Assembly: GCA_037379345.1 (NCBI GenBank)
Contig: CM074524.1
Coordinates: forward strand, 24,920,750 to 24,984,749
Direction: 5' to 3'
Length of the DNA stretch: 64,000 nucleotides
Source of the DNA: Perna viridis
Lineage: Eukaryota
The notes under the pieces are model-generated. The model saw only the letters and a list, made by a program, of their open reading frames with translations. It was not told the DNA's origin and did no database searches. Numbering within the stretch: the stretch's first letter is position 1; each line of letters begins with the position of its first letter. The position numbers and the translations under genes are program-made. This document shows positions 12,687-53,400 of the stretch, piece after piece.

Positions 12687-12855
12687 TACTGTAAACCAAC
12701 CTAGTTTGATGACCAAATGAAAACATGCAAAAATAAAACTCTGCAAATATTTCTCTACTTCTCCTCTTCCTTGCAACAGAGGGAAAGTGGCAAAAATAAA
12801 TATCAAACACGGTTAAACTGATTTGATATCCTGAAAACAAGTCGGTTTTACAGTA
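12687..12855. mobile_element. Short MITE relic
   Basis: Imperfect TIRs TACTGTAAACCAAC...GTCGGTTTTACAGTA. Confidence 0.5.
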
Positions 12856-13539
12856 CTAACAAAAAAAAAATAAGAAACCTGTTGGCACAATTTTCTGTAA
12901 GGTTTTTTTTTTTTTATGACAACTTTATGGGGATACAACAATTATTTTAAGTTGCAGCTAACCATTTGATAAAAAGATTCAATTAAAAGTTTCTAACAAC
13001 CTTCTAGAAGTAATTAAGTACTAAATCTATTTATATAAATGCTGCATGACTGAATCCTTGTAAATGTCATGAAGTGAGGTTAATAAGGAAATGGTTTTCA
13101 TTTTTAAATAGAAGAACCAAACCATAGCCAATAACTTTGAAGACATCCAAAAAATAGGAAAGCGAAATACCAAGTCATTAAAACACATACTTCCTCCTAT
13201 AATTATCTCAGGGCATATTTATACCCTACTAATGTTCACTCTAAGTTCAAAATCCTCGCAGAGTTCTATATCATTTGATGAAGTCTTTTAAAAGGATTGG
13301 AAAAACCTAGTACACAGTCAGCTTTTATGACTATTGGCATATTTTGGATGAGGACGGATGGAAGTTCCAGTATCTTTCAGGCAATTTCTTTTCATTGGTT
13401 TTAAGCCAGTAAACAATTTTAGACAAGTCTACAGAATTCCTGCTTTTATGACTTTTGGCATTTTTTCTCTTAACACTTTTTGTAAGAGTCAAATTGAATG
13501 AATAAGGTGTAAACATACTAATGAAGCGTCATTTATAGA

Positions 13540-13705
13540 CTGACGAAAAATTGTAAAGCAAACATTATCAATTAAATTCAGTATAATTGGTAGACGAAAA
13601 ATTGTACAGCAGTATCGTTTACGATTAAATTTAGTATATTTGGTAGACGAAAAATTGTAAAGCAGTATCATTTATGATTAAATTTAGTATATTTGGTGGA
13701 CGAAT
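13540..13705. repeat. ~52-bp tandem repeat, ~3 copies (GACGAAAAATTGTA.AGCA...ATTAAATT.AGTATA.TTGGTA)
   Basis: Read directly. Confidence 0.75.
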
Positions 13706-15169
13706 AGTTTCTCAAAGTTAAAATCACAAATATTAAACCCTAAGATATAAAGAGTTTTTTGGGTTTGAAAACTATGGCATTCCAAACAAAAGAAAACCAA
13801 AGTTTCTAAAGTATCAGAAAATAAATTCCACTATAAATTATTGGGATATAAAGCAGTTAAATGAAAAGCTAAGTATCAAAGCAGATCTTGAATGAAAATT
13901 TCTAACCTGAATGAAATCTTAATTTACTCTAACTCATTTCCCACTTGAATGCTAAAGTAATTTTTGTTTTCAATATGAATCAGAAATTTGACAAAATATG
14001 AATAGGTTTTTGAACAATAATGTGAAACCTGACAAAAGATAAAATAAAACTGGAGAATTTTGTTATTAAAAAAATGGGGAATCATCACAACTCTATTATA
14101 TTACTTCAAAACAATTTCCTCCCCAAACATTTCATTTCATGGAAAGAGCCACACAAGAGATGATTCTGAAAATTCATGCTTTACCAATATCACCGAAAAA
14201 GTATTTAGATAACAGACATGGAAAACTAATGATATTCTATCTAACAATATTAGAGCTTAGATAGACTTTTTCTGGTAATCTGAGGGTTTATTCCTCGAAT
14301 GCCAACATCCTTTGATCTACTGGCAATTTACCTGTAAAATTTTGTTGGCGTTCAAGGAATAGGTGTCACTGGTTATCACAACAAAAGTGCATGCTTATCA
14401 AAACATTCATACTAATGAACAGATAGGTAAATTACAGATGACTTATTTCAGTTCATATTTCAGATAGTTATTCCAGTTGTTAAAATCTGTTTTTTTTTTG
14501 GCCGTTTCTATTCATGCATTTCTTCATAAAATCATACATGTACATGTATAGCACAATAGACTTTTGAATTATTTTTGTGGTCCAATAACTTGAAGATATT
14601 TCAATAGATCATTGAAGTTCTGTAGTAATACTAGAATAGTTACTAAGTATGGAGGTTTTGTTTTAATAAAATATTTGTAATTGCAACACAACGTAGAAAA
14701 TCCTTTTTTGCAGTAAGTGGTTTAAGGACTATACTCTTATTACTATAAATTGATATCACATGAGGCATAAAAATGTAGAAAATAAATGTATTCATATTAA
14801 TTAGTTCAAATGTTAGAATGATAAAGAATGAAATCAATCATTAATACAAAGTTCAGAGTTTGAAATAATGTTTATTGATGTTAAATTTCTTTAATATCTC
14901 TGTATATAATTTATACATTTCTTAAATAAAAGTAAAAAAAATGTTAAAATTTTATTATGTTTTTACAAATTTTAATAATTCAATTTTATTATATTTTTAC
15001 AAATTTTAATAATTCAATTTTATTACATTGTATATTCTTACATATTTTCAAAAATCTGCTGTTTTCCATAAAAAAAGATATATTAATCTCAACAGTTAAA
15101 TACTTGTAAAACATTTTAATTGTTATAAAAACACCTTTTGTTATGATATAAACATCTATTAAAATATTT

Positions 15170-26400: not shown

Positions 26401-29400
26401 ACAGCGTCTCTTCATAATTGTCAGCAGCAGGGCTCAAGGTGGCTATCATCACAGTTTTGCTGTTGCCTCCAAGATTGTCCTTAATTACACAAAATGCATT
26501 AAAAACACATCATTACTATTAACCTTTGGAACAGTTAATTTGGGAGATTCTCCCCCTACATCTCTGTCTCATGTGGAAAATTTTTACGTGAACAAAAATT
26601 TTGGGAATATGAATTCAGTAACAGTATTTTTCACAGAAAACGAACATGTAGTTATTTCAACCAAAACATCCCACAAACCTTACATTTTTATGTGGAGGAT
26701 TTTAAATTTTCATTCGTTTTGAAGGAGTCTCCCCCTAATGTGGGAGGGTTTATACGTATATGTTATTGTATTTAATTTTTTTTTAGTATTAGACCTTCTA
26801 AATTTGAGAAAGACATTATTTTGATCCAGTTATCATCAATGGGATAGAAAAAATGGGAAGTACAAGAAACTGTGTATATATTTATATGGGTTGTTATCAC
26901 TGACACTTTTCCCCTTTCTTTTTCTAAATCATGGGCTGTTTCTTCTAATAACTGATTTGAATGATGTGCATTTTTCCACTACAAAACCATAACAAATTAG
27001 TTTTGGGCTTGTGCTTATTAATTGGACCTTATAGCAAATTTGAATTGTACAATATATAAGGCCAAACAAAACAAATGCCTATTCCCAGGCCACTTCTAAA
27101 AAAAATTGATGCAGAGGGGAGGCTTTTTTGTTTTGTTTTGTTTTGTTTTTGTTTTTTTATCAGAAGCAGGTTTTCTTCTTTTTTTTCCAAGAAATTTCAT
27201 CAAATTGAACAATTCTGTAAACGTACAGGATGTGGAGAAGTTAAATAAAATACTCTGTGGCATTAAAACTTTACTGGAATATGAGATGTGGCAAGAAATA
27301 AAAGCCATCTAACCGCCATGAGACAAACTTTCATTTTTAATGACAAATGTTAAATAACAGCCTCATTCACATCATACTTTTTACCTTTCTGTCAAATGCT
27401 CAGATGCTTCCGTAACTAATTAAAAGTCGATTCCGGATTGGATATGAAAATTTCCAGAATGGATTTTACCATAATAAAAATTGCACATGCAGGAGGGTTT
27501 ACAGGGATGCGATAGTGCCAGAGAACCTAGCATATTTTTTTAGCCTAACAAATATGTGTATTAGTGTCTTTTTCATATTACATTATTTAACTGTGAGGTT
27601 ATTGTCATTCAGTGATCCTACCTTGAGAAGCCATGTTAGGACTGAGTCTCTGTAAGGTACGAACTTGTCCTTCTTTTTACCAGCAGATGCATCAGCAAGG
27701 GCTGATATCACAAGTCCTAGTGTTGTCAAGGATCTGTAATGTAAAAATATCTTAAGTTAAAAGGCTTTCCTTTGGTCAAAATGTATAAAATTATCTTTCC
27801 AATTATTTTGTAATTGCTCTTAATGTGCAAGAGTTAAAATGCCAAATATCAACATCCATTTCAGTTACTACATTTTTTTTTAAATCATGCTTTTTCTTAT
27901 TGTGCTTCAAACTTTTGTGTATCCAAGGACCATAGTGTTTGTTATGCTGCTTAAATCAAAATTAAACCCTTTTCAAGATTACGCATCAGTTTGCTTTTGG
28001 GTTTTTTCTTTCAGTGATAGATTTAACATGGCAGCTGTTGCTGTCCAATACAAAAATGCTCTAAACCTATCTGAATATCTATAAGAATAAAGTGCAAAAA
28101 AGATGTCATGCTTTTTTTTTATGTTCAAAACTTGCCCTTTTTGTCTTTCAAAATCAGCAAAACAGAACTAGAGATCAGCTTAATATCTGCAAGAATTTAG
28201 AAAAAGTCCAGAAAGCTGTTTGTCTCATAATAAAGGATGCAACTACATCCCTTGTCACTGTGTGGGAGAATGTAATTTTTGACATCTTATTTACTTATTG
28301 ATATTAGATCCTTCTTTCAATCGATCTCCAACAGCACCAGTCTTCTGAGCACGCTCACTACCAGCTAAATCTACCAGACTTATCTTGCTGACCTTTTCAC
28401 CACTGACCTGAAATGAAAAATAAAACAGAGATAGAAAAAAAAATTCTTATTATTTTTAAAATTCTTCCATGAAAACTTCTAAATGATCAGAGTGGGTGGA
28501 TGACAATCAAAAGATACTTCCCACTTATTCACAAGTAAAATGGGAACATTAGCTTCACACAAGAATTCCTAATTGGTACTTCTTGCATATACAATTCATT
28601 TTTAAAACCATCAAAATTCAGTAGATTAAAATAAAGAAAAACTGAATAGTTGAAAATTTGAGAAAATGCCGTTAAAGCTAAACTGTGACATGCAGAAAAA
28701 AAAAAACTGTAAGTCACAAAAAAAAAACAATTATAAAAGACACCTACACAAAATGGAATAATTTTACAATTACTATGACATAACCTGATTACCTACATGA
28801 CCAATAAATGACCTGAACTTAACATAAAAAGTAATTTATGAATGAACTAATTCTTTCAATCAATTTGTGTCTCCTTCCCTGTACTAAATAACTCTATAAT
28901 TGTGTCTCTGATCTGGATAGCGAAAAATCAAAAACATGTCAATCCACCGAGGGAATGATACATGATGATTTTTAATGTATGCAAATTAACACTTTTAGAC
29001 CACAGAATCTATACTTGTACACCCAAGTTAAATTTATCATTTCATATTCATAATTTATAAAAATGTCTATCTTCTAGTGTTATTCAGTGGTGGATGCAAA
29101 AGTGGGATATTAAATCCATCTTTCATTGTTATACATGATAACTGATATTTTAAAAATAGTACTAAAATGTTGATTTTACAGCATCAATTTGATGTGTCAG
29201 GTTTCCGATGAAATTTCCAGTAATTTATTGCTGTAAAGATTTGTATTTACAGTGAAACCTGCCAAAACCAACCCTGGATATACCTAAAACCCGTGAAACC
29301 AGACACATTCAAAATATACGTTTAAATACCCTTTAACCAAACAAATGTTTAACACTGAAAGAAGTTCAGTTCAGAAAAGTTCCACTAAAAATTATATGAG

Positions 29401-32400
29401 AATAATAAATTTGTGAACGATAGCCATGTTTTAAAGGTAAAAAAGGAACTAAATACAAATAAAATAAGAATAAAAAAGTAAAAACAAATTGATAAATTGA
29501 TAGGGCTTATAGTTATCAATTTGTTTTTACATTTTATTCTTATTTTATTTGTATTTAGCTCCATTTTTACATTTTCAAAGTGGCAATCGTTCACAAATTC
29601 ATTATTATTATTTATGTTTAATCTAAGCCACTTCACAAAATAGATTAATTTTAAAATTTATATGCAATGTCCAACACTACTCGTAGTAAAAATACACTAG
29701 AACATCATAGGCTTAAAAAAAATCACATTATTTCAATACAATAATACCCCCCTCTATTTTACATAGAAATGGTAAAACAGTCTAAGATCAAGCCATTTAT
29801 TGTATTTGCATCAAATCTACATCCATCAATCCCAAATTAATATATATACACCAAAATTAATTTTTTCACAAATTTTTCTTAGATATAACAATTTTCTTGT
29901 CATACCTGTCAAAACTGCATGTTCATTTGTGAGATTTAAATTTACAATTTCAATATTAATATGACTTACTGTCTAATTATCAATTGATCAGATGGTTTTT
30001 ATTGTTTAAATTTTGACACTAAAGGAAATTACAACATTCCCTAAAATATGATGATGAACTTTACTTGTAAAAATTAAGTATTGAAATCTCTCAAGTGTTA
30101 TCAACTTCTCAAATAGTTGTTGAATTTTTTTAAATGAAAGTATGGCAGTACAGAAATCCAATATTCAAAAAAGATTCACGATCGTTCAAGAAATATAAAT
30201 TGACAAAGTGTATACAAACTGTGAAATGTTAAGTAATCAATAAACTCAGAAATAATTCATAAAGTTCATATTCAAATAATTTAATCACCAAAATTGTGTC
30301 CTTTTCATAACAGTCTACTCTATACCTAGTCATATCAAGAGTGAGGTATATATCCCATCTTTTTACCTAACGTGAAAAGAGCCAGAAATTTACCTGGCCC
30401 AAAACATCAGGGCTGACTTAGCATCTACATGTATAATGGGCCTCAACAGGACTTCTTGTTTCTTAGGTGTGTATCTATTGTTGTTTCATGGAAACTTCTC
30501 CAGTTCTCTTAAAACATGCTGAGTATTTCTTTTATAGTAATATTTAAGACACATACAGTAAGACATTTATTAATACCCAGAAAATTCTAACATTGTATAA
30601 TCAACACTCCAACTTAAAACATACATTGTACATAATAAACCGATTCATAACATAAACCAAACAATTACTGTTTATTACATAACTTGCTAAATACCTTTGC
30701 TGTATCAAACTTAATTTGGCTTCTTGGGGGCTACTCATACTACACCATGGACTATGACAATTACAGTCCTATTATTGTCATTGAACTATACCTAACTACT
30801 GAACAACAAAACATATTTACTATAGGCTTGTGGATGATCCTGACAAGCTAAAGTGGAAAGTATGAAAGAAAGGATCTGACTTAAAACCCTAATATGGTGT
30901 CTAATTTTTAGGCGGCAGAATGCAGCCTTGCAGGGCAATGGGCAGTAGAAACCAGCCAGATGATAACAAGTTGAAATTGATTGTAGGTGGTAGACTCCAG
31001 CCTAAAGACTGATTTAATTATTTACGACATAATGAACACAGGCGTCAGAATCCAGCCTGAGGCTGAAGATTCCAGCCTATTGAGATAAAGGCAGTCACAG
31101 TTATATATGTTCTGGCTCTTACACCAAAAAAACCCTATATTACTCTCAACTCATATCGTATTCCTAGTTATGCAAAAACATTAATCAATAAACAATGATA
31201 ACGAAATATTAGTATGATGTATACCTGAATTGGGGGAAAATAATTTCCTGAAATTATACAGGCCAAATGAATGAATACATACACAATGTATGAGAGAAGC
31301 CCCCAAGAAGTATACAACATGAAAAGTAATTAAATACCCTTAATTAGAAATGCAAATATTAAAAATGAGATCAACAAAAAAAACCAAAACAAAACAACAT
31401 CAATAAAAAACATACCAGATTATTAATATATTAAAACAACTGGAAAATGTATAAAGTACATAAATTTCCTTTTAAAGATTAACTTTTCACTGTTATTTTT
31501 TTAATCACTGTTATTTCATCTTAGTTAAAAAAAATCATCTTCTTTCAACCTACTTTTATTTAGTTTAAGTTATATAATTTGTTTTCTCCTATAAATTAAT
31601 ACTTTAATATAAATTGAGCACTAGGACAGCTAAAATCTTTTTTTTTTATTTTCAAGTCATCAGAAACATATAGTTAAATTTGATCCACTTATCCAATTCT
31701 CTTAAAGATGTACAGACAAAATTGAAATCAAACTTATATAAAACATAGCAATCCTTAAAAAATCACCACAAAAAATATCCCATTTATTCTATGACACCAC
31801 AAAATCAAATTAAAAAATAAATTACCAATCAAATTTAATGTGAAAATGAGGACATTAAAACCATAAGACATGTCAATAATATAATTTATGTAAATGAACT
31901 GTAAAACTAACCCCATTGTCAAATCCATCACCTCAGGTGCATTATCATACACCTCTGTGCAGAGGACAATGAAAACCATGTCGGGGATATAAATCACTTA
32001 ATCTTTAATTGTACATTATAACTGGACTTTTCAGGTTAGCACCTAAATGTGATAATATCTATATACATGTATTAGAGTAGAACTATTTGAAGTGAGCACA
32101 AACCCGGTGATATGATGTGATTTAATCCCAAAAGAATAAACTCTATATAACCTAATGTGATACAGAAGTGATAATTCAACTTTACAATGTGAAATGTGAT
32201 TTAGATACTTATAAGAAATAGATTTTAAGTATAATGTTGGACTCTAAGACTTACTGGATTTATATAATTGTGACAATATTACAAGTTTACAGTGCTAAAA
32301 GCCAAGGCCACACTGACCAGTGGACTTATAAAAATTACAGAGGAAATGACACCCATTCTCAACAAGGTAAATATCTCATCTTTCTCACCAGTAAAAAAAA

Positions 32401-35400
32401 ATATGTTTATTCAATTTACATTTCTTAAAATTTTTGTTATGTTATAAAATTTATACTTTTTCACAGCTTTCTTTCATCATCAAAGTTGTATCTAACTTTC
32501 AATAATATCTTAATGCATATTAAAATGTGCAAATACATGTTTTAATCTAAATCATTATTTAATTTCAACTTGCAATTACAAAAACATTGTAAAATTGTAA
32601 AAAAAAGAATATTTTCTCACTTAATATTTTTATACTGCAATTCCATGTATTTAATTATCAACAGAGGCCAACCTTTCCCTTTATTTTTTATAACTAGAAG
32701 TAGAAGATAATGTTTTTTTTCCAATTTCAAACAATATTGGCAATTCAAATATTAGTTGAACACTTATCAATGTAATCATTTATAACTAATGTAAAATGGT
32801 CAAAGAACTGATTTATTTACTTACAATGTGATTAAAATGGTAGTTTAATGTCTGCATTTAATTTCATGAACACTGATATCCACTCACATTTACTATTTTG
32901 AAGTTTGATTAAAAAAAAATAAATACAAAAATGGCAATGAAGCAGAACACACATAAAGAAACTATTACAAACTTTGAAAAAAAAGAATATCAATCATCTC
33001 AAACCGATTTATAAAACAGTTATTAAACCCTTTTGCTTTAACACTATTAATCAAACATATAAAGTTTTCTTTGTGGATATTGGTTGAAACCTTCAAAATA
33101 CTTAAAACACTTTCCACTAAAAAAATTTGTATTCCATCAGGTTTGCCACACTCCTACAAAGATGTCTACATATCTGAAGCCCACCAACAACCATCCCAGA
33201 AACATCCTACCTACCAGTACCCGGGTCGGGCTGCTGCATGGAGTCAGAATAATGGCCCAGCTCAACCAGCCAATAATTGGAACCAACAGAGCAAGCCAAC
33301 AATTTCATACAAGGGCAGAAACTCTAATTTGAACTCAGGACCTTCACAACCACACATGAATCAGAAAACCCCTAACTGGATACCACCGAATCATCCTTCA
33401 ACAGGGAACCACCATTCTAACCTAGCTCCATACAGTGTTCCAATGAATCCAGGAATGGTTCCATTTATTGACCCTGACCTCCCTGATGGTCTAGATGACC
33501 TATGGGAAATGCAACAAAAACAATCAGCAATTCAACACATGATGAATAGTAACCCAAGTCTTACCCAACAAATGATGTCTATGCCAAAGAACATGATGCC
33601 AAACAATATACAATCTCAAGGTCAACAGCAAGGTCCAGTAAAAAAGCCCAGTGGTCCTGGCAATGTTAGAATTTATACAAACCCTAATACTGGTCAATCA
33701 AATGGACTTCAGTGGAATCACCATAACACTAACAGCATGCCCCAAGGAGCTAATTATGAACAACATCAAATGGAAAGGATACCAAACCCTGCATACACAA
33801 TACCAGTGAATGGGAATAATGGGACACAGACTGGGGAAACAAGAATCACTCATCTAGACCTGAGAGATAATTCCCAACCAAAAGCTATTGCTTTCAGAAA
33901 TCAGTGGTACAGGAAAAGAGGAAGACAAAACCAAGAAAGCACAACACTCAAACCAACAGCAACTACAACACCAAGTCAAACTCCACAATCTAGATGGAAT
34001 CAACAGCAGCAGCCAATAAACTCAAACCAACAACAGCCACAAAATGCCAACTATCAACAGCGACACAATACAAACTATCAACAGCAACCCAGTTCCAACT
34101 TACAACAACAACAAAACACTTACTACCAACAGAACCCCAGCCAACAATACATGGGACGGTCTCACTTTGCCACAACACCATTTCCTGTTTATAACAAAGA
34201 AAATTTACAAGAATCAAATCCAAATATACAACATGGTATGAATGCCTACAATCTGTACCAACCAAATCACCAGTTTTTTCCATATCAACAACCAAATCCA
34301 AGTCAGGGACAATCTCACTACATGCAACCCAACAATTCTGGAAGCCAGAGAAAAAGTGATGAGGATCAAATGCAGTTCCATCATGGTGGACAACAATATG
34401 CAATGTATCAGAATGTACAACAAGGTAACAATGGAGGCACACCAATGGGCTGGAATCAAAGGAGGCCTGATTTGTCAGAATACAATGAACAAGATGATCA
34501 AAAGTCACCAAATGTTGGACAACCTTCACAACAACCTGAGAATGAAAATGAAGGACAATATAAGACTAGGCCAAATATTGCCCCAGGTCAATATTACAAA
34601 AATCAACAACAGCATGTAGGTCAGAGAATGCCACTAAACAGCTTCTGGCCATCAAATGGACCAGGACAGTTGCAAGGTAACCAGCCTCAACTTGGAAATA
34701 ATGGGCCTTATTCAGGGAGATTCAATGGCAATCAGCCTTATATTCGACCTCCACACCGCAATCAAGGTGGGGAAAGTGAGCAGGAAATTGAAGGACAGAG
34801 ACCCTTTTCTATGACAAATCAAAACACAGGGAATACCAGAATCAGTGACAGAATGCTTCAAGAATTACTTAATGAGAGACTGAAACAGAGAGGAATTGGA
34901 CACCAGTCAACTGGACCCTGGTCCCCAGTTCATGAAGGTGGCTATGGATACCAACCAGGACATATAAATCCCCAACTGCAAAACACAAATAACCCTAAAA
35001 TGGCAAAAGGTCCAAACAATCAAAAACCAAATAATCAGAAAGGTCCAAGCAAGGGAAATTCCCAAAAAGGAGGAAAAATTCCTTCTATAACAGGAAGGGA
35101 AGTCTGGGTAGATCCTAAGAATCAGCAAGAAATAGCTGCTTCAAGAATGAAACCAAATGTTCTTGATGAAATTTTAGACCAGTTTTTATTGGGAGGTGCT
35201 GACGAGATAGATACACCATATGGTAAAATAGAAAGAGAAAATAATGGTGGCTATGAAGTAGAAGGACCTTTACTTAGGATGATTCTAGCAGAAATAAGAA
35301 ATGGGAAAATAAATAAAACCAAGAATGCATCCCCATATGACCTTGAACATCAGAGAAAGTTTGCTGGCTTCAACCCAATGAGTAGAACACCAGCTAAACA

Positions 35401-38400
35401 AAGGGACATAAACCCAATACAACAAGGTGGAAGGAATCTGATGAATCAAAGAAAGAATGCTGATTCTCAGTCCTCACAAGAGGTTTCTCCTTCGATTTCC
35501 ATGGATCCTGACCAGCCCATACTTGATTCAATGAAAAAAGCAATATGGGAATCACTGCCAATAAATAGCAATACAAACGAACAAAGCAAACTACAACAGT
35601 CTGTCAACACAACCAAAGTAGAAACTGCCTCAAATCCTGGAAATATGGAATTGACAACAAGGAAACCAGAAACAACTATAATAGGGACTACAAGGCAGCC
35701 AAATGGCTGGATTCAGCCACAACAAACTCAAAGAAAACCTGACCTCTGGCAGAACCCAAGAATGCAAAATATTAAACTATCTCCCTGGGACCCAATAGGA
35801 CCTGAAGCTCAAGGGAGACAACCATGGAACCCATCTCAGACAGGACAAATGAATAACCAAGGATTCCTACCAGAAGGCAGTGGAGCAGGTGATAACATTC
35901 AGTTCCCACAAAACCAACAAATTGCTACCATGCAAAACATTACCCAGCCAACACCAATTAATGGTTCTTCATCAATTGGATCATTCAATATGACTCAAAT
36001 TATCCATACTCCAAATGAAGATCCATACCAGATCAAGGAACCACCTCCGATGGCTGCAAGAATAGTTCAACTTCCCGATGATTCAAGTACAACACCCAAA
36101 GCAGCAAATACTAGCCAAAGAACACAGGCTGTACCAAAGACAGCTGTAGAGAGAAAGGCTTCTGGATCAGCCTTTGGAGTCATTATAATTACGCTGGTAG
36201 TCATGGGATGTCTGATTGCTCCAGCAGCTTGTATTGTATGGAGGATACGTAAGAAAAAAAATGACCAAAAACGTAAGAATATCAAAGCAGATAGCTGCTG
36301 CAATGTCAAACTTGAAACCGATGCCATGGTCCTACATGATTTTGGGAACTGTGATATTGACTTAGAAAAGTCACAAGGTGCCAGGAGGAAAACTTACTTT
36401 AAGGACTTCTCTGACAAAGGTCACAATGTTCATGAACTTCAGCCATTGAAATCGAGTGACAAGACGCCAGCTAATGTACATAAAGCAATGGTGCACCAAG
36501 TCAATGAAGTTTTCTGATTGTAATAAAATCATGCAAATCATTTTCATTCTTTGTAATACTAAATTAAGAGCAGCACAAAACAAAAACATGTAATTTGATT
36601 GTATACCTTTGTTTGATGGTTGTCATTTTAGTGTTCTTTAGTTTATTACAACAGGGTGTTTGGTCAATACTTTATCTTAGGTCAAAAGCTAAGAGCTTCT
36701 TGTTTCTGGCAGACATCATTCCCAATGCACTAAAGTTTATATGTAATTGCAAATATGCATGGTTTTCTCATAGACAGCCTCTTAAATCACCTCTACGGTA
36801 CAAATGAACAAAAGGACAGATATATAAACAGGGTACACCACAATATGTGTATCCAAAGACTTATGACATGAGAATTATGAATCAAGCAATCTAAACCATA
36901 TCTTGATGACAACCATATAAAAAGTTTTTAAAATCAAAAGCGCAAATCCAAGATTAAAGATGCTAGAAAACTTAGGTCTAAATCAGTTTCACTGTTCAAA
37001 CACAAACCAATTACAAGCCAATATATTCATAGCAGATTCATTCATAAAAAGTAAATGCACACTTCACTTTACAAATAGAATTGATCGAAGTATGGATGAA
37101 AACATTATGCTTCAAAAAGACAACAATAGCTCACTGTTTACTAAGTGCAGCCCCAAAACTTGTACTAAATTACTCTAGTGATTATAGTGAAACTTGGTAG
37201 GCAAATTCACAACCAAAAGGTGACATTTCATCTACAAATAATGGGAGCTGATTTATTTAGAAGTGATTCATTAAATAAGTTAATGGGCCTTCCAGTTTTA
37301 GAAAGTATTGATTAATATGATGAGTTTCAACAAACAATCATTACCATTGCTTCTTCATGTTGTTTAAAGAACATGTCTAGAGCAGAAATAGGTCAATAAT
37401 ACAATTATCATGCATCCAAACTGATCTTACAAGAAATTTTCAAATGGTTTTGCATTATTTGTAACTATACGGAAAAACAGGGCAAAAAAATCAGTGTTGT
37501 TTAATGGAAGGCAAAGGATACTTGAATTTCTGCTGATTTCTGCATGTGTTCAAGACAAACTTAAAGATTATTGGATAAAATAAGAGTATGTCCTTCTTAT
37601 TCGAAATTGGTCTAGAAGCCGTTAACAAAATTATCTGTATCAATTTGATCAATTGGTGGTTTTACTTTGTTGGATATGAAAATATGAATTTCCACATCCC
37701 CATCCAATTTGTTGATAGAATTTAAAAAAAAAGCATTGACACCAAAAGCTCATTCAACTATAAAGTAAAGACATATCAAATCACTTAAAAGTTTAATTTA
37801 GGCATGTTTAGACACTGGTGGTTTGTAAACTTACACAAGAGCAACACTGAGTATGAAGACTCTAATTTCAGTTTCTTCTGTACGCTAAAACATTCAAAAC
37901 CTAGAATTGAGACTAATAGGGTAACTGAGGAGTAACTAAATGAGTTTCTCTACTCAAACACTGAACCAATTAATACCATATAAAGTAACAATACATGCAG
38001 TATAGAGATAAGATTGATTGTATTCTAAAAAGTAATGAGTTTCTTCAAACAAACCCCACAGAGAATCCTGTTGTCGAGAAGCATCAAAGCATGCGTTTGT
38101 TTACCATGTGCATAATCAAATAATGGCTGCAGTAGATACAGTCTATCTAAAACATTAAAAACTGCCTTAATCTAACTCTGTATAACATGACAAATGGGTT
38201 AAACCAGTATAGCACTTAACAATTTAAGGTAACATTTCTTATGAAGCATTGAACTAGTCAAAATTACTAGGTTTTTTAAGAGCTCCTGAAACCGTATAAA
38301 GAAGGTAAAATATTATCTGTTTTCTGTTACTGTACTACCAAACCTTATAGTACTAATGGAGAGTGAACAAAAATCAAATAGGATGACAACTATCTATAAA

Positions 38401-41400: not shown

Positions 41401-44400
41401 TCAAAGGAATTGAAGTGTTCAACTTCCAATAAAGGAAATAACTCTTCCAAAACTAACATATTTGGTAAGTTTGCCAGTTCACTGAAAACAAAAAATAACA
41501 AAGACCCTACAGCAAATAAACAACTCAAAAGAGTAAACAGCAAGAAGGTTATAAAAAATACAACTACTAAGAAGAAATACATGGATGATTTAAATTTAGA
41601 GGATTTTTCCGACAGTGACCATACCAAAAAGAAAAGCTCAAAAAGGCTAGTGAAAAGTCAGGGTGGGAAGAGTAAGAAAAAGACTTCATTAAGTATTCCA
41701 CAGAGAGAACAAAAGAAGACAGAAATAGATGATGGAAAATCTGAAACTATAAAACATGAAAGTTCTATTGAACAAAATAACCAATTAACAGAAATCAACC
41801 TGAACATTCAACCAGAGGAACTTCCTGTTGAACCAAAGGAACTTCCTGTTGAAAACAAAAAGGATGAACTTCTTCTGGTTAACATAGTGGACACTGCACA
41901 AGATAAAACCTCCCATGAAACCAAAATGGATGAGCATAGTAGTTACCATGACAACAAAAAGCAAAAAGAGCTTCCTATTGTCAATATAGAAGACACTACC
42001 CAAGATAGAAGTTTCAAAGGAAATGAACACCAAGACAAAGGTTTCCATGGTAACACACATATCAACAATGTTGTTGCAATAACACTGACCACAGAAGAAG
42101 GATTTCAGTCCAAACTAGAGCTTGGTAGTGAACTGGACTTAAAACACATAAAAGACCAAGTTAAGTCATGATTTTATCAAACTTTATGGTTCCTTTTGAT
42201 TTTTGGAATACTCAAAAGGGAAAAATTGAATGAAGTTAAAACTTGAATTTCCAGCAGGGATTCTCTAAACAGACTATACAGGAAAAAAATGAACTCTACA
42301 TTTGTAGTCACAAGAATTCAAACCAAACTGTTACATAAACCATTGACTGAACTTAAACATTTGCTGTGCTTAAAATTTCTTAATGAACATCAGAGGAACA
42401 ATGAGACAATTGGAAGTGAGACCATTGGACAGTAAGACCATTGGACAGTGAGACCAAGAGAAACATTTCTGTAAGGTTTGATAGACTAACATGAATAATT
42501 CAAGATAAACAGTGGAAACATATGTGTAAACTTGCTTTAAAAAATAAAACTGAAAATTGCATCAAGTGATTAATCAAATGCTGTTAGCAAAAGTTACAAC
42601 TGATGTCTGACTTCTCAAACAAATTTCATCTCAGAGCAATGAAGGGAACCATGATTCTAGCAGAAATCAAAAGAATATATTCCAAGGATAAAAAAACTGG
42701 ACATAATAAACAGACACATACAAAAAAGAACATGAAATAATCAAAATATCATGTTCAAAGAGATCAAAGTTAATGAGCAACACATACTCCAATAAAAACT
42801 GGGATCATGGACCACATGTGCACTGATTATAAAAAGAGTCTAAAAAAAACCCTGCTAAGATGCTCATAAAATGAAAGAAGAAATAAAATGTTTATTTCTT
42901 TCTGAAGAATTTGATAATCTTTGAAACGATGAATTATTTTTTACATTGAACAGGAAAGCCATCAGAGCAAAACATCGCAAAAGTCTGAGTTTTCATGTAC
43001 TTAAACATTTCTATATTATATAGGAAATATGAGCTTACTCATGCCTATACAGAGTCAACGCCTTAAAACAAAGTAAGAATTTGTACATACAGCCACTAGG
43101 CTTATTTCTTTCATTATTTTGATTGATTTCAAATAAACATTTGATTTCTTACACTATAAAAATCACATCATGCCACGAAGATAATTAAATTATCACGTCA
43201 ATACATAACGTAGTAGAAATTTTATTGACAGGTTCCCTGTTAAATTTGTCTTATTTCTAAATCCACGATGTTAAAAACAGTTTCTTTTAAAGTGAATGTT
43301 CTGTGTGATAGAGAAAAGGTTGTGAAGGAAAAAATCAAAGTACCAAAGTACTAAAATAAAGATCAAAATTTCAAGGCATAACATTCCTGCTAAAACTCAT
43401 GTAGAAAGTGATACAATAAAAACAAAGCAACAAATAAAAAGATCAAAATATCAAAGTAGAAAGTCAATACAGATCACATATTTAATACTACATAAACCTC
43501 ACCAAAGCATTTAAAGCAAACATATAGCAAAAGATTACGTTGGTATGGTTTAAATTGACCCTTTAATTGTCTCGTTTTGCTCTTGTGGTGGATTTCTTCA
43601 AAAACTATTACAGCTCTTCACAATTCAAAATCATATTATTCTTGTTACTTATTATAAATCATTCTAAGATTAATTTGACCTTAGAACCTCAACTTGTATT
43701 TGATCCTATTAAAGAGCACCGAATCAAATAAACATTCTAATAATTTTTCTTTAGGTTTTGAAATGTCAGTCCTTAAGTTCTCTATTTATCTCTGTTAAAG
43801 TGGTTTTAGTTCATGAAATCAACCCAATTTCAAATTTCTGAATTTAAATTTCATGTTTTATAAAATGAAAATTGAACCAATATTTTAATGTATTCCTTAG
43901 TAACAAGATACTAAACAGATTGTTGTTAATAATTGTTTTGTAATTTGATAATCAAAGAACTCATAATTTATTCATCAATTGCACAAAGAAAAGGAAAACC
44001 TATTTAAAATCAAATGGCTCAAATGGCCTTCATACATGTAAATTACATCATTAATCAGATACAAATCATTTACAGCAACATTTGTTAGATCATCTCCCTA
44101 GTCGCAATATTTTTCTACACAATGAACCTGTCTTAAGATAATCCTGCATTTACCAGAAACCTGCATAAACAAGACATAGTAAAAAGTCCTCACATATAGT
44201 TATATAAATTTTAATATGTTAAAACCAAACAAATACTTCAGTCCAAGAGGTTCCGTTTACACAGATTTTACTGTATGTAAAAAGTTGTATCTAGGGATGT
44301 GATGGTCTGACAATCTGTAATAACCAAATAGGTGTTTACTTAGAAGTATTTATTGAGCATGGTGATCAAAATGTTTTTTTCATCAATTAAATATTTTCCA

Positions 44401-47400
44401 TTTCCCTTTTCTACAATAAAGAACTTTATATCAGGTTAAATACACATTAGGCTGTGTTTGTAATTTATATATATTTTCTATCTATACAGAAATAACCTTA
44501 GTCATGTGATGAACATCAAAACAACTGTGAATCAGTAAAAGTATTACAAATAGACAGAAAAATTATTATAATCATTCCTTTTTTCCTTTTTGTTTAATTT
44601 CAGTATCAAAATTTTATGAGTAAATCATCCACAAAGGTTGATAAATTACTGTCTCATACCAAAACTATGTTTCTGGGATGACAAGACATTTTTTCATCCA
44701 ATCAGAAAAAATTTTACTTCTGAAATTTAATTGTAGGAAGTTCACTTAGGTCGTGTTCATTTTTCGTTTTTGTTGCCTTGAATCTATTTTTTATACCTAT
44801 AAAATGTTCATATCTAGAAACAGAATCTTAGTAATTAAACAGTTGATTATTACATTTTTACAATGGAGACAAGTACAGTTAAACTGAAGGACTCTCTAAG
44901 TAACTAAGATGACTGGTAAACAGGAAGTTGATCTGCAATCACATAAAAAATTACACACACAGTACAAATCATCTTACTAAACACTTATACAGGAAGTAGA
45001 AGTGCTACAGACCTGAAATTCAAGCCAAGGATATGGGACCCCATATAGAAGTTGCGTACCAAAAATCTAGCGAATGTGATTTATATTTACTGAGAAAAAA
45101 GTTATAAAATATTTCCCTGCCACCAACCCAACTGACATTCATCAATCTATAAGTCTATTTACATGAACACAACCCAGTCAAAGAATATTTCCTTATAGTG
45201 ATTGTAATGACTGACCAAATTTAAATGGACTGAGGTATAAACAGCTGTGTAAAACAGGATTCCTAGGATTTTATAAATTAAATACATAGTATGGTAAACT
45301 CAACAATGTACAAGATTATTGTACCCATGAACATTATTTGGTCTTTTACTAATAAAAAATATTTTATTTCAAATAACTAAAAGACATTCCTAACAGAGAA
45401 ATTTTCTATTCCTTCAAAATATATAACATTATAACACCAGTTTCATTTAGCTTTTTTTTCTGGGTTAACATTACTTTAGCTTCCATCCTCATAAAAAATT
45501 GCTACCTCTAATATGATGCTTTGAGGCTATATTTTAACATTTCACTAGATGCCCATGAAGGTTACAAAATAATATTGACTACATGTATGATGATGTCAAA
45601 CTGTCTACAAAATGTTTAAAATTGTTAATTTAATATCACTCCAGAACATGATTGTAGAGTATCGTGATCAGGAATATGGAACACGCAACACACCAAGTGT
45701 CATATTTTAACAGTGAATCCTGTCCAACCAAACTATCAATATATCCAAAAACCTGTTTAAAGCAGACATCACATGTAGTCCCTTTCTGTAAATAATGATT
45801 CATAGTAAACCTAGGTAAATCTTATACCTGCCTAATATGGACAAGACTGCATGTCTAGAAGGGGTTTTGATTGCACAGGTTTCACTGAACTTGGACACCA
45901 GTTATGTGCAATGGACAAATTTATTTTTTACCTCATATTTAATGATCTGTGGGAGAAAAACATGATCAAATGAGAGAGCATACAAAGGGAAACAACTCTA
46001 TATTCATCACTTACAATATTTTTTTTAATGTTACTAAAGTTAAAGGCCAAATTATTCATCAAAAGAATATTATTATTCTGTCATCAAGAACAAATTGACA
46101 CTCTATAGAAAGATCTAACTGGTAACATTTAATAAAGAAATTAAAAACTAACATAATTAAAATAAAAAAAAGAGAAATATTGTGTACATTCTGCCACCTA
46201 TGTCTTTCAATGTCTCACTGTAAGGGTCCAGACACAGATAGTCTTATACTTCAAAACTTTTAAGGCCTGTTAACTGGGTTAACCACATACAAACCAATGT
46301 CATCACTCCCTTAATTACATATTTATGTATTGAATGATTTCTTTTTCACCATACTGATACTGACGTATTCAAACATTTTCTGATAGTATATTTCAGTGAT
46401 AAGATACCATTCCAATCAGTAAAATTCCAGTTTGGAGGAGCAAGAGTCATGACAAAACTCAATAGACAAAAATGTCTAGTACTACCCAACATAAGACACA
46501 TGCACAGTAAAAGAAAAAGATCTACAAAATATTTACGGATTCCATTAATACTAATCTAAAGAATAATAATGTTAACAATGAATATAACATCAATCCTTTA
46601 AAACCCTTTCACCAGGGATGATTAACAACTGGGTAATGGAAACTTTCAAATTAGAAGTAAACGTACAGTAAAATGGAGAACTGTTAAAGAATGACTAGGA
46701 TTAGAAGCTAGAGGCTCTAAAGAGTCTTAATTGCTCACCTGGAGAATTTGAAAACAAATAATCATAAAATAAAAGAACAGCGTTCCAATGTCCCCCACTT
46801 AAAAAAAATGTGAAAAACTCTAAATTCACTGAAATATTCTAAGTCCAAGGGCTGTAACTTCTGTAAAAACCATTCAACCATATCTAACATCTAACTTAAT
46901 CTGTAACTTCTTATAGTAAGACTACAAACAAAAAATTAAATCAATTGGTAAAAGCATTACAAAAAAAATGAGGAAAACTGTAAATTCAATGAAATTTTCT
47001 AAGTCCAAGGGCCATAATCTCCATAAAATCATTCAACCATAACCAAAGTCGAACTTAATCTGTAACTCTTCATAATAAGGCTACAGACCAAAAACAAAGT
47101 TATTTGGTAAAAGCATTACAAAAAAAAGTGTGGAAAATGTGGATGGATGGACAGATGCCTGGTATTTCCATGTCCCCTCGCGACACATCGCCGGGACAAA
47201 AAGAATTATTATTTAAAGAGGTCTCTATACTTGTATCATACCTGCCACATACTAAGCCACACAATAAGAGGAGAACAATGAGATCATCAACCCTATCAAG
47301 TATCAAAACAGCAAAGATATGTATGTGCTGTCTTCTACCTAATTCTTATTGGGAGTCATCATTAAATTACCCTTCCAAACCTGTCCTGAGACAGTTTAAC

Positions 47401-50400
47401 CTTCCACATTAAATCAGTAATGTCATTGAAAGGTCTAAATATTATCATGAAAATAAAACAGACATATGTGATAAACTTCTGGCACAAATTTAGCCATAGA
47501 ATGTAAGATTACATACATACTGTAATGACTTGTTTTTCTTTTTGTTATGGTATTTAGAAATGGTCCAGATATAACTGTGTGATTTGAATGGTCCTGATGT
47601 ATCTGTGTGATTTGAATGGTCCAGATGTATCTGTGTTATTTGAATGGTCCTGATATATCTGTGTGATTTGACAATATCATATGAAAATACTTTTTATAAC
47701 AGTTTTGTTAACTGCTGCAACTGTGGCAGGACAAGTATTAAGATGACATAGTTTTCGACATTCTTCTTGTGAAAAACATGTGCTCAGAAAAATCAAGAGC
47801 TTAATTTTGAGAGATCTGCATTCTATGGAACTACAAATGTGATCTATTGTGTGTTTTCTATTCAATCAGAAAATGAAGAATTCAGCTTGCATTCTCATTA
47901 TGTAAAACAAATGCTCAGCTGAAAGAAAAACTCAGAATTAAATAAGAAAATTCTTCATTATTTGAAACTACAAATATGATACACAGTGAACAATTCAGAA
48001 ATGATGACTGACTACAACAAGCACAATGTATCATGTTAATAATGAATTCAAAGACATCCCAACATGAAGAATTCTCACTGCATTTTTGGTTCTAAAGGAT
48101 TAATACTCATATTATGGATCTTAATTTCATTCTGTGAATCAAAGTGCCCCGGTTCATGCACTCAATGTGACAAGAACAGTTTTGGTGACATTGTGAACGT
48201 AACATGTCGAAACAGTGGAGACTTTCAATTAATTCCTAGAAATATTCATAACATTGTATTCCAAAATGGCAAACTTCATTTGGGAATCCTTAAGGATTTC
48301 TATTTTCTAGGAATCCATGATCTCGAAAGTGTGAAAATATCGAACTACCAGTTAACAGAATTATGGGGTCCTATATTCTCAAACTGTTCTGAGCTAACAC
48401 GCATAGATTTCACCAACAACAAAATTCATTCAATTTCCAGCGAAAATTTCGAGGGACCCTCTGCTTTAGAAATCTTGCGGCTAGATAAAAATGAAATTAG
48501 CATTCTTCCTGATGATGTATTTAAAGATCTCGGCAGTCTGAAGGAGCTTTACTTAGCAGACAATCAAATCTCAGTATTGACTAAGTTAGCCTTGAATGGG
48601 CTAATAAATCTCCATAAACTTGACATATCTAGGAATGTGATTAATTCTGTTGAAGCAAACACTTTCAGCTCACTGTCAAATATCGAAGAAATTTATCTCA
48701 TAACCAATCAACTTACTTCTATTCATGAACATGTATATAATGGATTAGCAAGGCTAAGAGTACTTAAACTATCCCATAATTCAATAGTAAACATCTTATC
48801 TAATGCGTTAAGGGGTACCAGAATTACTGACTTGGATCTATCATGGAATAAATTGGCAAAAATACCAACTACTTTGCTAAAACAAATATCGGGAAAAGAA
48901 ACAAGTGTTAATTTACAACAGAATAACATTAGAGTTCTAACAGCATATAGTCTGGAAAATGTTACACTCAAATTTCTAAATCTAGCATTAAACAAAATGG
49001 CAAGAGTTGAAGGCAGAGCAACTGTAAACTGTAAGGTGAAGTACATAAATATGGCAGTTAATCTGTTAACATCCCTTCCAGCAACAATGGAGAACTACCT
49101 AAGTTCAAGAATTAATCCCGAGTTAGTTTTGTACAAAAATCCACTAATTTGTGACTGTAGTATAAGATGGTTAGGAGAGTTTCTATTAAGTCATCGCTGG
49201 CATAGGATTCCTGTATGTACTACACCTTTACAGTATGCTGGGAAGACCCTTTCTGACTATTACTTAAGTTCTAATGATAGTTGTGTCACGACAACAAAAT
49301 CAAGCATTACATCTGTATTCCCATATTCACATATCAATCTATCAAAGAAACCTACCTCAAGAAAACCAAACATCATAACACAAATACAAAGTTCAACAAA
49401 TCAAGTAAGGTCTATAACTGCAATATTTCCATCAACATCAGCATTAAAATTAACAAACAATACTCCCCTATCAACAGGCCTCCAAGGAAAGTCTTCAGTT
49501 AAACCTACTGAAAAACTGACAACATCTCTGACATTCAAACAACCAGTATATGTGTCAAAATCAATGAATGCTTCACCCACACTAAGTCCACAACCAAAGG
49601 TGTCAACATCCCATACAACCAGCACACGGTCAACAACAATGTCAACAACAAACAATGGACCAAAGCAAACCACAATGATTTCTGCAAACCAATCAACTAA
49701 AGCCACAATATTTCATTCTAACACCACAAAAAATACAACTAGCAACAAAAAACTGACAACACAGTATGTTAAAAACACTCCAATTCTTAAAACAACAAAA
49801 ACACCAAAAAAGAACAGTGCAACATACCAAACAAAACAATCAATATCAGTTACCATGCCAACTGCTTCATCAACAAATCTATCAACAAAACAACTGAAGA
49901 TAACTTTACCTGGTCATTCATCATATCGATCTCTAAATTCTAGTAGCACATTCACCAACAAAGAAACAAGCATTACAACATTCCTATCAAAAATACAACT
50001 TCTAAGTACATCTACTAGAAGTCAAAATAGCATACACAAAACCATAAAGACTAAAACAAAAGGCCCTCTTACCACTTCAACAAAAGTTAATAATATCACA
50101 TTATCCCCTAATACTGAGCCTCAAGCATTACCTACTGCAGCCCCTCGATCTGATCGACAACTAAATCCCACAGCAGCACCACATACAGACATCTATGGGA
50201 ATATAATACCTCCTACCAGAAACCATTTATCCTCAAAACTAACTGAGAGCACATTGTTGCCTCTGACTGGATCTACTAGTCATGCCAAAACCCTCAAAAC
50301 AACTCATAATTCCAAAAACATCACAATCCCTGCAACCTCCATCATAAATTTCCAGAATTTAACAACAGGCAACATCTCAGATTCAACCCAAACCTCACAG

Positions 50401-53400
50401 ACAACAAAAAACAAACCAATTACTCCAAAGAAGCATAGCACAATAACCATGACAACAACAGTAGAAACTGACCAATCATCAAACAGTTCATTGTTGACAA
50501 TAGGATTACCTATTTTGATAATACTTTTGATCATTATTGCAATACTGTTGTTTTTACTTCTGTTTATGAGATCAAGTAAGGAGGAAGAAAAGGAAGATTT
50601 ATGGCCATACTACAAGTATGATAGAAGGACCTTAGGCCCAGCTAATACTGTGTTCAAGTATAAAAAGTGTAAACAATGATAATTAAAAGTCATTCATAAA
50701 AATGTGGTATTATTTTTCATTTACACAAAATGAATTTTATATAGAGACTATGTCCTGAAATGAGATTGAACTCAAGATTTAACGGTCTATGAATACTGTG
50801 GAAGAATAATTGTACATAAGGTATGAATTCTTATGGTGTTAGTGGTTTGGTCAAACCATAAATTCAAAAGTCCATATGAACTGGCATTTGAGTTGAAAAC
50901 TAACAGGCTCTACTCAAATAAACAATAAAAAGGCTTTACAAACACAAAATTTGATACCCATGAAAATAGACTCCTTTATAGTACATTAGACCAATCTTTA
51001 CATTTACAATTACAATTTTCTCCAAACATTATATACTCTAAAGGAATACAAATGTCCTAGTTCTTAACCTAATCAATTACATATGAAGTTAATTTAAAAA
51101 AAATGTTGCCATTTTATTGATAAAATACTGCACTTTAATCCCCATCAATTGAAACTAACTGACTGTAGGAACAACTGAATACCACCACATATGTGTAAAT
51201 TACAGCTTATCAAAAACAACAAAGATTATTAGGATTTTTAGAAATACCCATATCAACTCCAAATAAAATTCTGATAATTATATTTCTATGTTATCATAAA
51301 TAATTTTCCATTGATGTGGGATAACAGTATTAAATGAAATAATTCCTTTACAAATGATATTTTTTTTTCTATTTGTATACTCCTACAGTAGTTGTGTACA
51401 TATACCTAGAACAGGACTTTCTCCTTTAAACATAAGAAAACTTTACAGATTAAACATATACATAGTTGAAACCTTTTATCAATGCAGTTTATTTCAAGAG
51501 GATATAATATAGAAGTTTCAAACAAGGGGAAATCCACAACCAAACCCACACCATTTTAATATCTTGTGAATTGCAACAAACATTACTTTGAATCCTGCAA
51601 TGTATCATTTTTCCTCTGCTGTTATAATGTACCCGGTCTTTGTTTAGATACACATCTTAGACCTACCCCAGAGGAGATATCTATCAGTTTCTGTGCCAGT
51701 ACAATGTACCCAGTCTTAGTTCAAATACACATCAATACCTTACCCAGAGGTGACATCTGTCAGTATTTCTGTCAGTATAATGTACCCAGTCTTTGTTTAA
51801 GTACATATCAAATACCTACCCCAGAAGAGATATCTGTCAGTTTCTGTGTCAGTACAATGTACCCAGTCTTAGTTCAAATACACATCAATACCTTACCCAG
51901 AGGTGACATCTGTCAGTATTTCTGTCAGTATAATGTACCCAGTCTTTAAGTACATATCAAATACCTACCCCAGAAGAGATATCTGTCAGTTTCTGTGTCA
52001 GTACAATGTACCCAGTCTTAGTTCAAATACACATCAATACCTTACCCAGAGGTGACATCAGTCAGTATTTCTGTCAGTATAATGTACCCAGTCTTTGTTT
52101 AAGTACATATCAAATATCTACCCCAAAAGAGACATTTGTCAGTATTTCTGTCAGTATAATGTACCCAATCTTTGTTTAAGTACATCAAATACCTACCCCA
52201 GAAGAGACATTTGTCAGTATTTCTGTCAATATAATGTACCCAGTCTTTGTTTAAGTACATATCAAATACCTACCCCAGAAGAGACATCTGTCAGTATCTG
52301 TGTCAGTATTATGTTAAACACGGCATGAGATCTGCTACTTTCATTGTTCATGTTAGTGGCAGCGACAGTTCTAGATTTATTTCCTTCACTCATAAGATTG
52401 TCTATGTCCTAAAAATAACAGGAATAAACTGACAAACCAGAAATACTGTGGGCAATCTCACAATGTGAACATCTCCTTCAAATAGGGGCAAATGATCAAT
52501 TCAAAACCCTTTCGTTATAGTATTTTCCTGTGGAGTCCCCTAGTAGTAGATATATTCCTTCATGCACATCTATATTTGAAGTCAAACTTCCCAAAATATT
52601 TTACCAAAATCCCAAATAGTGGTTATGGGGAAGTTGCACCTATAAGAAAAGTGGACAGATGAACCAATGGACAGACAGACAGACAGACAGGTTGATTCCT
52701 ATATACCCCTAAACTTTGTTAGTGGGGATAAAACTAGAAAATAGTTTTGTTCAGTCTTAACTTTTTTTTGTATGTCTTTGTTTTATTGAATGTTTTTACC
52801 AGAATTATTTGTACAAGGAGGGAAAAAAGAGTATTTCAATAATAAAACTTAAATGTATTGTATTAGACTAAATAAAAAAACAAAGTAAATAATTAAAACA
52901 TGTCAACACAGAGTGACAACCTCTCTTAATGTAAAAGTTTTACCTCAAACGATGAAACAGCTAACTGTGACAACCCATCAACATATGGTCCCAGTATATT
53001 ATGTTCCCTAACTTTTAAATTCTGTTTGCTCCTGAAAGAAAAAGGAAAAAAGAATAAAATCACAATTAAGTTTATTTTTGATAAAAATAACCTTGGCCTA
53101 ACCTTTCTGTTGCCAGATAAACCTAAAAATCTGATAGATGCAAAACCTAAACCATGTCTTACAAGTTGTTAACGAATATCAGTGTGAGGCTTCTCTTCAA
53201 ATCAAGAGTTACAAACAGGCAGACGGATAGTGTAAACTTACTTTGTAACCGTCAATAGATTGCCCTCTAGTTAAAGCAGGAACTGATACAAGTACTTTTT
53301 TCCCCTTATTATTGCATTTAAATGTCTGAAAACTTGAAACAGTCCATTTAGTTTTTTTCATGAAACCATTTAAAATACTGAGTTTTTGGTTCTTCTCCTC

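Follow-up and report, generated by a model that had tools for sequence, protein, structure and literature searches.

What keeps three unrelated genes together within a single intron of a fourth, and does their company mean that they work together? The question is raised by a 64,000-nucleotide stretch of the genome of the mussel Perna viridis (NCBI GenBank assembly GCA_037379345.1, contig CM074524.1, forward-strand positions 24,920,750 to 24,984,749; hereafter the window, with all positions counted from its first letter). Here, a KIF13-type kinesin gene hosts, in the intron that separates its switch I exon from its switch II exon, three genes on the opposite strand, which we call A, B, and C, each encoding a single-pass surface protein of a different family. 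The reading that we consider quite likely is that these are three independent antisense genes, which entered the intron before mussels, oysters, and scallops split, have been kept by purifying selection, and are linked mainly in a passive way. Our literature search found no paper describing this KIF13-intron nest, which gives the invertebrates a well-documented example of several genes nested together in antisense, shared by three bivalve orders, and offers a clean natural test of whether long-term co-nesting stems from function or merely from entrapment in an essential gene.

The host reads as a KIF13-type kinesin-3 gene, given its kinesin motor motifs and KIF13B as its nearest match in the PDB. 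Specifically, the exon carrying switch I (NNESSRSH, with SSRSH at 52339-52325) occupies 52274-52408 of the minus strand, as delimited by a motif scan, its open frame, and a GTAGGT donor, and the exon carrying switch II (DLAGSE, 28371-28354) occupies 28294-28407 of the same strand by motif scan and open frame; the motif scan also placed the kinesin motif FAYGQTG at 61042-61025, again on the minus strand. A GTAGGT follows the last position of the switch I exon, 52274, the intron closes with TTTCAG at 28408, and the next exon runs from 28407, with TDVSSG joined to VSGEKV in phase 0. This splice-site reading yields a minus-strand GT..AG intron of 23,866 nucleotides (nt) at 28408-52273, exactly as the initial annotation had claimed, and the 0.5-6.3 kb that it gave for the neighboring introns is consistent with the exon segments, whose approximate boundaries leave introns of about 1.5, 6.3, and 0.5 kb upstream and 0.6, 1.1, 1.9, and 0.8 kb downstream. 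For a neighboring host exon, the closest PDB structures were KIF13B motor domains (E 1e-33, versus about 1e-22 for KIF1A and KIF14). Further, the switch II exon is 94-97% identical to its counterparts in Mytilus coruscus and Mytilus californianus, the kinesin exons overall are 85-94% identical to those of Mytilus, and the switch I exon is 85% identical to that of the oyster Crassostrea virginica (locus L014, 18441-18298). The window itself holds only the motor region and the exons that follow it; the FHA, KIF1B, DUF3694, and C-terminal CAP-Gly domains are present in the annotated orthologues from Mytilus, oysters, and scallop that carry the same exons.

Three long plus-strand open reading frames (ORFs) lie inside this verified intron, namely A at 33071-36517, B at 40960-42171, and C at 48064-50679, and all three coding sequences (CDSs) fall wholly within it. 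Given the intron's composition (32% G+C, stop-codon probability 0.076), the chance expectation for such open frames is 9e-38, 3e-11, and 2e-27, respectively. Hydropathy identified one transmembrane (TM) segment in each protein and, additionally, a signal peptide in C. Only C matches a Pfam family; A and B had no match even at E 10. The three have no mutual similarity, the best pair in BLASTP reaching only E 0.35, and thus the trio is not a tandem duplication, as had been proposed from the lack of visible resemblance. The initial description of three intact antisense ORFs with one TM segment each and large low-complexity regions is likewise borne out by the ORF list, hydropathy, and composition, and so is its count of zero or one coding intron: B and C have single coding exons and A has one predicted intron, to which B adds at least one intron in its 5' untranslated region (UTR). 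Independent DNA sequencing runs, from at least three studies, contain 57-91% of the sampled sequence words of the A-B region, and two Logan contigs are colinear with that region at 99.6-99.8%. Logan contigs L003 and L004, which match A and B at 100%, were considered as transcripts and rejected, being colinear with the genome including the intron, and were treated as DNA; the runs of the sample from which they come contain 64-91% of the whole A-B region.

Gene A is predicted to encode a type I membrane protein with a disordered ectodomain rich in glutamine, asparagine, and proline (Q 12.6%, N 10.9%, P 9.7%). Its main exon, at 33141-36517 on the plus strand, is defined by the ORF, homologues, alignments, and an AlphaFold2 model, and the protein is laid out as a predicted signal peptide, some 1,000 mostly disordered residues, a TM segment (residues 1013-1031 of the exon-2 protein by hydropathy), and a conserved tail of about 95 amino acids (aa). 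A first exon at 32234-32366 on the same strand, with an ATG and a hydrophobic, signal-like N-terminus, is predicted from sequence reading only; its donor GT (32367-68) and the acceptor AG (33139-40) join it in frame to the long ORF. RefSeq models of A in Mytilus likewise carry a separate N-terminal signal exon, as judged from alignment and gene ranges, and the similarity of the predicted exon to the Mytilus N-termini was not significant (E 1.9). A word search recovered homologues in Mytilus trossulus, M. californianus, M. coruscus, and Mytilus edulis at 33-54% identity over local alignments, the identity to Mytilus otherwise standing at 37%. The Mytilus alignment resolves islands of conservation: a 14-residue motif, a block of about 70 residues around ITGREVW...RMIL, the TM segment, and the tail motifs GARRKTY, HELQPLK, and VHQVNE. 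Such islands, in both A and B, stand amid otherwise fast-evolving sequence. The exact motif DPDLPDGLD occurs in A of mussels and oysters, and the pattern of TM segment plus tail is common to mussels, oysters, and scallop. AlphaFold2 modeled the C-terminal 488 aa with a mean predicted local distance difference test score (pLDDT) of 41, with order only at residues 35-85 and in the TM helix, the conserved block appearing as a helix / three-strand / helix unit at a pLDDT of about 60-75. No fold was assigned, as the only matches in the fold search were between the long TM helix and unrelated coiled coils (Z 5.5-5.8). ESM Atlas look-alikes, obtained with the stored Mytilus homologues of A and B, all scored below 0.9 and speak to architecture only; among them, a syndecan/neurexin-type tail for A scored 0.85, and the corresponding Pfam family, PF01034, was not matched. 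Like B, A is single-copy in this 723-Mb genome.

Upstream of A, a 57-nt non-coding island at 31843-31899 (plus strand) is conserved with Mytilus (blastn, 77% to L005 9675-9731 and L001 11802-11858). It lies about 335 nt upstream of the predicted ATG of A, its Mytilus matches sit just upstream of annotated A genes, and it may be a promoter or 5'-UTR element of A. Apart from a repeat family at 46801-47137, no other non-coding island of the intron shows conservation with Mytilus. At the other end of the gene, an AATAAA lies just downstream of the stop codon.

Gene B has a CDS of 403 aa at 40960-42171 on the plus strand, defined by ORF and hydropathy, within a coding exon that, as transcribed, starts after the AG at 40756-57 and spans 40758-42249 on the basis of RNA reads and a contig, its 3' end lying beyond. 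The protein comprises a short N-terminal stub (about 20 residues), a TM segment at 22-40, basic residues, and a tail of about 360 residues that is rich in lysine, serine, and glutamate and holds a conserved RRNS site; its overall composition is K 14.4%, S 10.2%, T 8.2%, and E 8.2%. The basic residues that follow the TM segment would place the N-terminus outside and the C-terminus inside under the positive-inside rule. A word search found B in M. coruscus at 42% identity, and against the Mytilus homologues more broadly the identity is 42-46% overall, with the first 100 residues, including the TM segment, nearly invariant. Together with the kinesin exons at 85-94% and A at 37%, the 45% of B sets this sequence closer to Mytilus than to oysters or scallops. 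Identity with TMIE was considered for B and rejected, since the Atlas score of 0.89 reflected architecture only and Pfam PF16038 was not matched.

Gene C (48064-50679, plus strand; 871 aa, from its ORF and Pfam LRR_8) has the most recognizable layout, with a signal peptide at residues 6-24, a cysteine-capped leucine-rich repeat (LRR) domain, a serine/threonine-rich mucin stalk, a TM segment at 817-835, and a charged tail of 36 aa. The LRR_8 match, in five stretches, reached 1.5e-37 and 127.5 bits against a cut-off of 27, and nine LxxLxLxxNxL starts recur about every 24 residues; serine and threonine dominate residues 401-800. The closest solved relatives of the LRR head are generic (IGFALS, LRRC15, LGR4, TLR3, and LRRC32), and a word search with C likewise returned only generic LRR proteins at 23-37% identity, the orthologues being unannotated or outside the length filter. 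M. coruscus and M. trossulus each have an intact ORF, absent from their annotations, with which C shares 48% identity (in M. coruscus, over the LRR domain), and C is 32-35% identical to oyster genes at the same position. In the reverse comparison, an oyster LRR protein searched against this genome found C of the window as its best match (8.7e-62, versus 1.5e-19 for the next, a difference of 42 orders of magnitude). Stalk length differs greatly between species, the M. coruscus homologue being an ORF of more than 1,670 aa with a huge repeat stalk of serine, threonine, glutamine, and proline, and between mussel and oyster no conservation is visible in the short tail.

The age of the nest emerges from its position in other bivalves. 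M. coruscus retains the switch II exon, A, B, and an unannotated, intact C homologue in the order of the window; M. trossulus (L009) has A, B, and C in order, with A antisense inside the RefSeq kinesin gene; and in M. californianus, where A and B were seen, A again lies antisense inside the RefSeq kinesin gene. A profile of the C-terminal half of A, searched against 1.84 billion representatives, reached beyond mussels to the scallop Argopecten irradians (XP_069106194, 2.9e-17) and the oysters Saccostrea echinata (XP_061171654, 2.2e-08) and C. virginica (LOC111125944). Across M. californianus, M. trossulus, A. irradians, S. echinata, and C. virginica, A is antisense within an annotated kinesin gene with Kinesin, FHA, KIF1B, DUF3694, and CAP_GLY domains. 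The C. virginica locus (L014) is the most complete of the distant ones, with the switch II exon at 1377-1231 (minus), A at 3773-5917 (plus), a B-like signal-anchor ORF of 237 aa at 7178-7888 (plus), an LRR-mucin-TM gene of 1,282 aa at 9977-13849 (plus), and then the switch I exon at 18441-18298 (minus), all within about 16.9 kb. Saccostrea similarly has the switch II exon, A, a B-like ORF, and C, and the Argopecten locus has A and an annotated 898-aa B-like gene inside the kinesin gene. The B-like genes of oysters and scallop match mytilid B in position, orientation, and architecture, as well as in an IFY-type TM motif, and a profile-profile comparison gave a probability of 76% and E 2e-5 over 40 columns.

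With the trio at the same intron in mussels and oysters, and A and a B-like gene there in scallop, the nest predates the split of these three lineages. The ordinal splits within Pteriomorphia are early Palaeozoic in age. The split of mussels, oysters, and scallops falls inside Pteriomorphia and is later than the divergence of Pteriomorphia from Heteroconchia, which lies more than 500 million years back (PMC10755359). Comparison of the orthologous KIF13 intron in related genomes, which the initial annotation had offered as a check, finds the arrangement kept in Mytilus, oysters, and scallop, and the orthologues not scattered. It also defines two unannotated membrane-protein families: A, across the pteriomorph orders sampled, and B, at least in mytilids, with positional counterparts in oysters and scallop.

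Current annotations overlook genes of this nest, as B and C are uncalled in several of the bivalves examined. Specifically, C of M. coruscus, B and C of M. trossulus, B of M. californianus, and the B-like ORFs of both oysters are missing from the public annotations that we examined; the uncalled intact orthologues lie at L002 15949-end, L009 23174-end, L012 14385-15098, L011 15580-16179, and L005 21968-23014. Further afield, a more distant A-like family (P0137, P0139, P0140, P0141, and P0144, from ENA assemblies) has an acidic E-x-EGP motif and a matching TM segment and tail. At the one locus of this family that was examined (L013 3193-11608), no kinesin exon, B, or C was found within 10 kb on either side; the A-like gene there is multi-exon, has an acidic EI-x-TP-x-G...EG motif, and adjoins remnants of a mariner-type transposase.

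Are the genes under selection, and are they expressed? Synonymous divergence within Mytilus is unsaturated (dS 0.14-0.37), and the ratio of nonsynonymous to synonymous divergence (dN/dS) is 0.30-0.36 for A, 0.09 in the first 110 codons of B and 0.39 in its remainder, and 0.35 for the LRR domain of C and 0.84 for its mucin stalk. This comparison, another check that had been suggested at the outset, thus places dN/dS well below 1, at 0.09-0.39 outside the stalk.

Transcription was examined over 36250-42249, which takes in the 3' end of A, the spacer, and B, with three stranded RNA-seq runs and one putative transcriptome assembly. B is covered at a depth of 1-5x from about 40850 onward in the three runs (X21-X23), and every read pair on B has its first mate on the minus strand, which by the usual stranded-library convention indicates plus-strand RNA. 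A contig of the fourth run (X12, from another study and presumed to be RNA) begins at 40758, right after the AG at 40756-57, and carries 19 unmatched leading letters; together, these features indicate a 5'-UTR intron of B on the plus strand. Hence, plus-strand transcription, which the initial annotation had asked to be checked, was found for B, as was splicing. The last 270 coding nt of A and its 3' UTR (36250-36650) received no reads or contigs from the three runs and the assembly, and the 4-kb spacer between A and B had almost no reads in the same libraries. A is silent, at its 3' end, in the same libraries in which B is on. With B covered and the 3' end of A and the spacer silent, B is an independent, spliced transcription unit that would have its own promoter and need not be expressed along with A, and the co-regulation once claimed for the nest finds no support in these data, in which B is transcribed with no A detectable and an essentially silent spacer between them. 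Two RNA islands stand apart from the genes. At 36756-36786, reads fit over only about 30 nt, with unmatched letters on both sides, and at 39050-39480, reads occur in both orientations and a contig has seven differences; both islands are likely repeats or reads from other loci, rather than A or B.

Taken together, these observations can be accommodated by a simple course of events. The trio entered the intron before mussels, oysters, and scallops diverged, and its order and orientation have been kept since; purifying selection keeps each of A, B, and C intact; and each gene would have its own promoter and its own expression pattern. The linkage, in turn, would persist mainly by entrapment, in that any rearrangement with one of its breakpoints in the intron would wreck an essential motor gene, and not through a need of the three proteins for one another. 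Since such a breakpoint would break KIF13, the genes would be held together passively, and linkage alone is no argument for a functional module. As for what the proteins do, extracellular recognition or adhesion would be the most likely role for C, and tail-mediated signaling or scaffolding the most likely for A and B.

Several points weigh against this reading of three independent and passively linked genes. Entrapment is an argument rather than a measurement. RNA support in this species is for B only, with none for A or C from mapping limited to 36250-42249, and the genes may be co-expressed in other tissues. The signal-peptide exon of A (32234-32366) is a prediction from sequence, though a sound one. 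Among the more distant species, position, architecture, and the 40-residue profile match suggest only weakly that the B-like genes of oysters and scallop are orthologous to B, and C and the kinesin exons lie outside the locus fetched for scallop, which ended earlier, with only A and the B-like gene seen.

The explanation that fares best after that of independent genes is that the trio forms one functional module, in which C would be a ligand-binding receptor, A and B its co-receptor and adaptor, regulation would be shared, and selection on the partnership would keep the genes linked. All three are single-pass surface proteins, their order and orientation are kept from mussels to oysters, the TM and juxtamembrane part of B is unusually constrained (dN/dS 0.09), as would be expected of a helix packing against a partner, and the TM segment and tail of A are conserved across Pteriomorphia. 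However, entrapment in the intron of an essential gene predicts the same conservation with no functional link, and the cytoplasmic tail of C is not visibly conserved between mussel and oyster. The RNA evidence also speaks against it, as B is transcribed with no A detectable in three RNA-seq runs and one putative transcriptome assembly, and the silent spacer argues against a shared transcript. On this balance, we regard a single module as unlikely. A narrower form of the idea, which we hold to be quite unlikely, is that of a co-evolving receptor complex, with an LRR-mucin receptor and two single-pass partners whose linkage has been selected since before mussels, oysters, and scallops split. Platelet glycoprotein Ib alpha, an LRR-mucin-TM receptor that works with small single-pass partners, offers a parallel: like C, it has a capped N-terminal LRR head, a long serine/threonine stalk of the O-glycosylation type, one TM segment, and a short tail. 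The likeness is one of architecture alone, the closest solved relatives of C being generic LRR proteins. If true, a receptor complex would make this locus a metazoan "receptor operon-like" nest, convergent with that of NF1 and OMG-EVI2.

The human NF1 intron contains the antisense genes OMG, EVI2B, and EVI2A (PMC4394429), and the initial annotation had cited it as a structural analogy. The analogy is fair, and its layout is confirmed by that source: in each nest, a large conserved gene carries within a single intron three genes that lie on the other strand and are unrelated to it, and both combine two single-pass membrane proteins with one LRR and serine/threonine-rich surface protein, encoded last in the direction of transcription. 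They differ in that the host here is a kinesin, rather than a RasGAP, and the nest is shared among bivalves, rather than vertebrates. OMgp, further, is anchored by glycosylphosphatidylinositol (GPI), whereas C ends in its TM segment (817-835) and charged 36-residue tail and not in a GPI-type C-terminus. Of the overall picture first drawn for this locus, therefore, the three genuine, unrelated, nested antisense genes and the parallel with the NF1 layout hold, and the co-regulation, with B seen in RNA without A, is not supported; nor do the data bear out a sheltered cassette acting as one receptor/co-receptor/adaptor module or the mantle, adhesive, gamete, or haemocyte setting suggested for it.

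Could the two nests be more than analogous? The trio might be homologous to vertebrate OMG, EVI2B, and EVI2A, as an ancient bilaterian cassette that moved into different hosts. The layouts are very alike, with an LRR gene following two single-pass TM genes, antisense, in one intron (PMC4394429), and the language-model look-alikes of Mytilus A include, at rank 21 with a score of 0.79, a cluster with 17% EVI2B members. That score, however, is below the level often reached by shuffled proteins; A, B, and their Mytilus homologues P0124 and P0129 have no Pfam EVI2A or EVI2B match at E up to 10; the tail of C is not of GPI type; its LRR similarity is generic; and the hosts differ. We thus give this homology hardly any credence. 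Equally slight is the chance that the ORFs are non-functional, whether as pseudogenes, transposon cargo, or an assembly artefact, for although A and B have no Pfam family, RNA was not seen for A or C in this species with mapping over 36250-42249, and large parts are of low complexity, four to nine genomes carry the ORFs intact, dN/dS stays well under 1, synteny is conserved, B mRNA is spliced, and independent DNA runs contain the region.

Three independent genes in one intron also fit what is known of nested genes generally. By the figures that PMC4394429 quotes from Yu 2005 and Lee & Chang 2013, about 10% of genes in Drosophila and about 1% in human (373 genes) are nested, two thirds of them antisense; by the same account, nested genes are mostly unrelated in function to their hosts, and 58% of human pairs are conserved in mouse. 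The Perna nest resembles these in being antisense, having few or no coding introns, bearing no relation to its host, and being kept across species. It departs from them in that three genes per intron are uncommon and conservation across bivalve orders is deeper than in most documented cases.

Finally, several repeats lie in the remainder of the intron and in its neighbors. Rfam returned no family at gathering score anywhere within the host intron, and nothing was flagged as resembling human sequence. A 159-bp tandem repeat between B and C (46801-47137) resembles sequence in another kinesin intron of M. coruscus (L001 2363-2879, 69-73%) and probably belongs to a repeat family common to mytilids. 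Elsewhere in the window, the stop-free minus-strand frames at 685-1428 and 9397-11304 consist of short tandem repeats, with repetitive translations, and are more suggestive of satellite DNA within other introns of KIF13 than of coding sequence. A minisatellite at 51623-52314 (77/153-bp period, about 9 or 4.5 copies, 82-91% matches) begins in the host intron and extends 41 nt into the switch I exon, taking in the real donor site.

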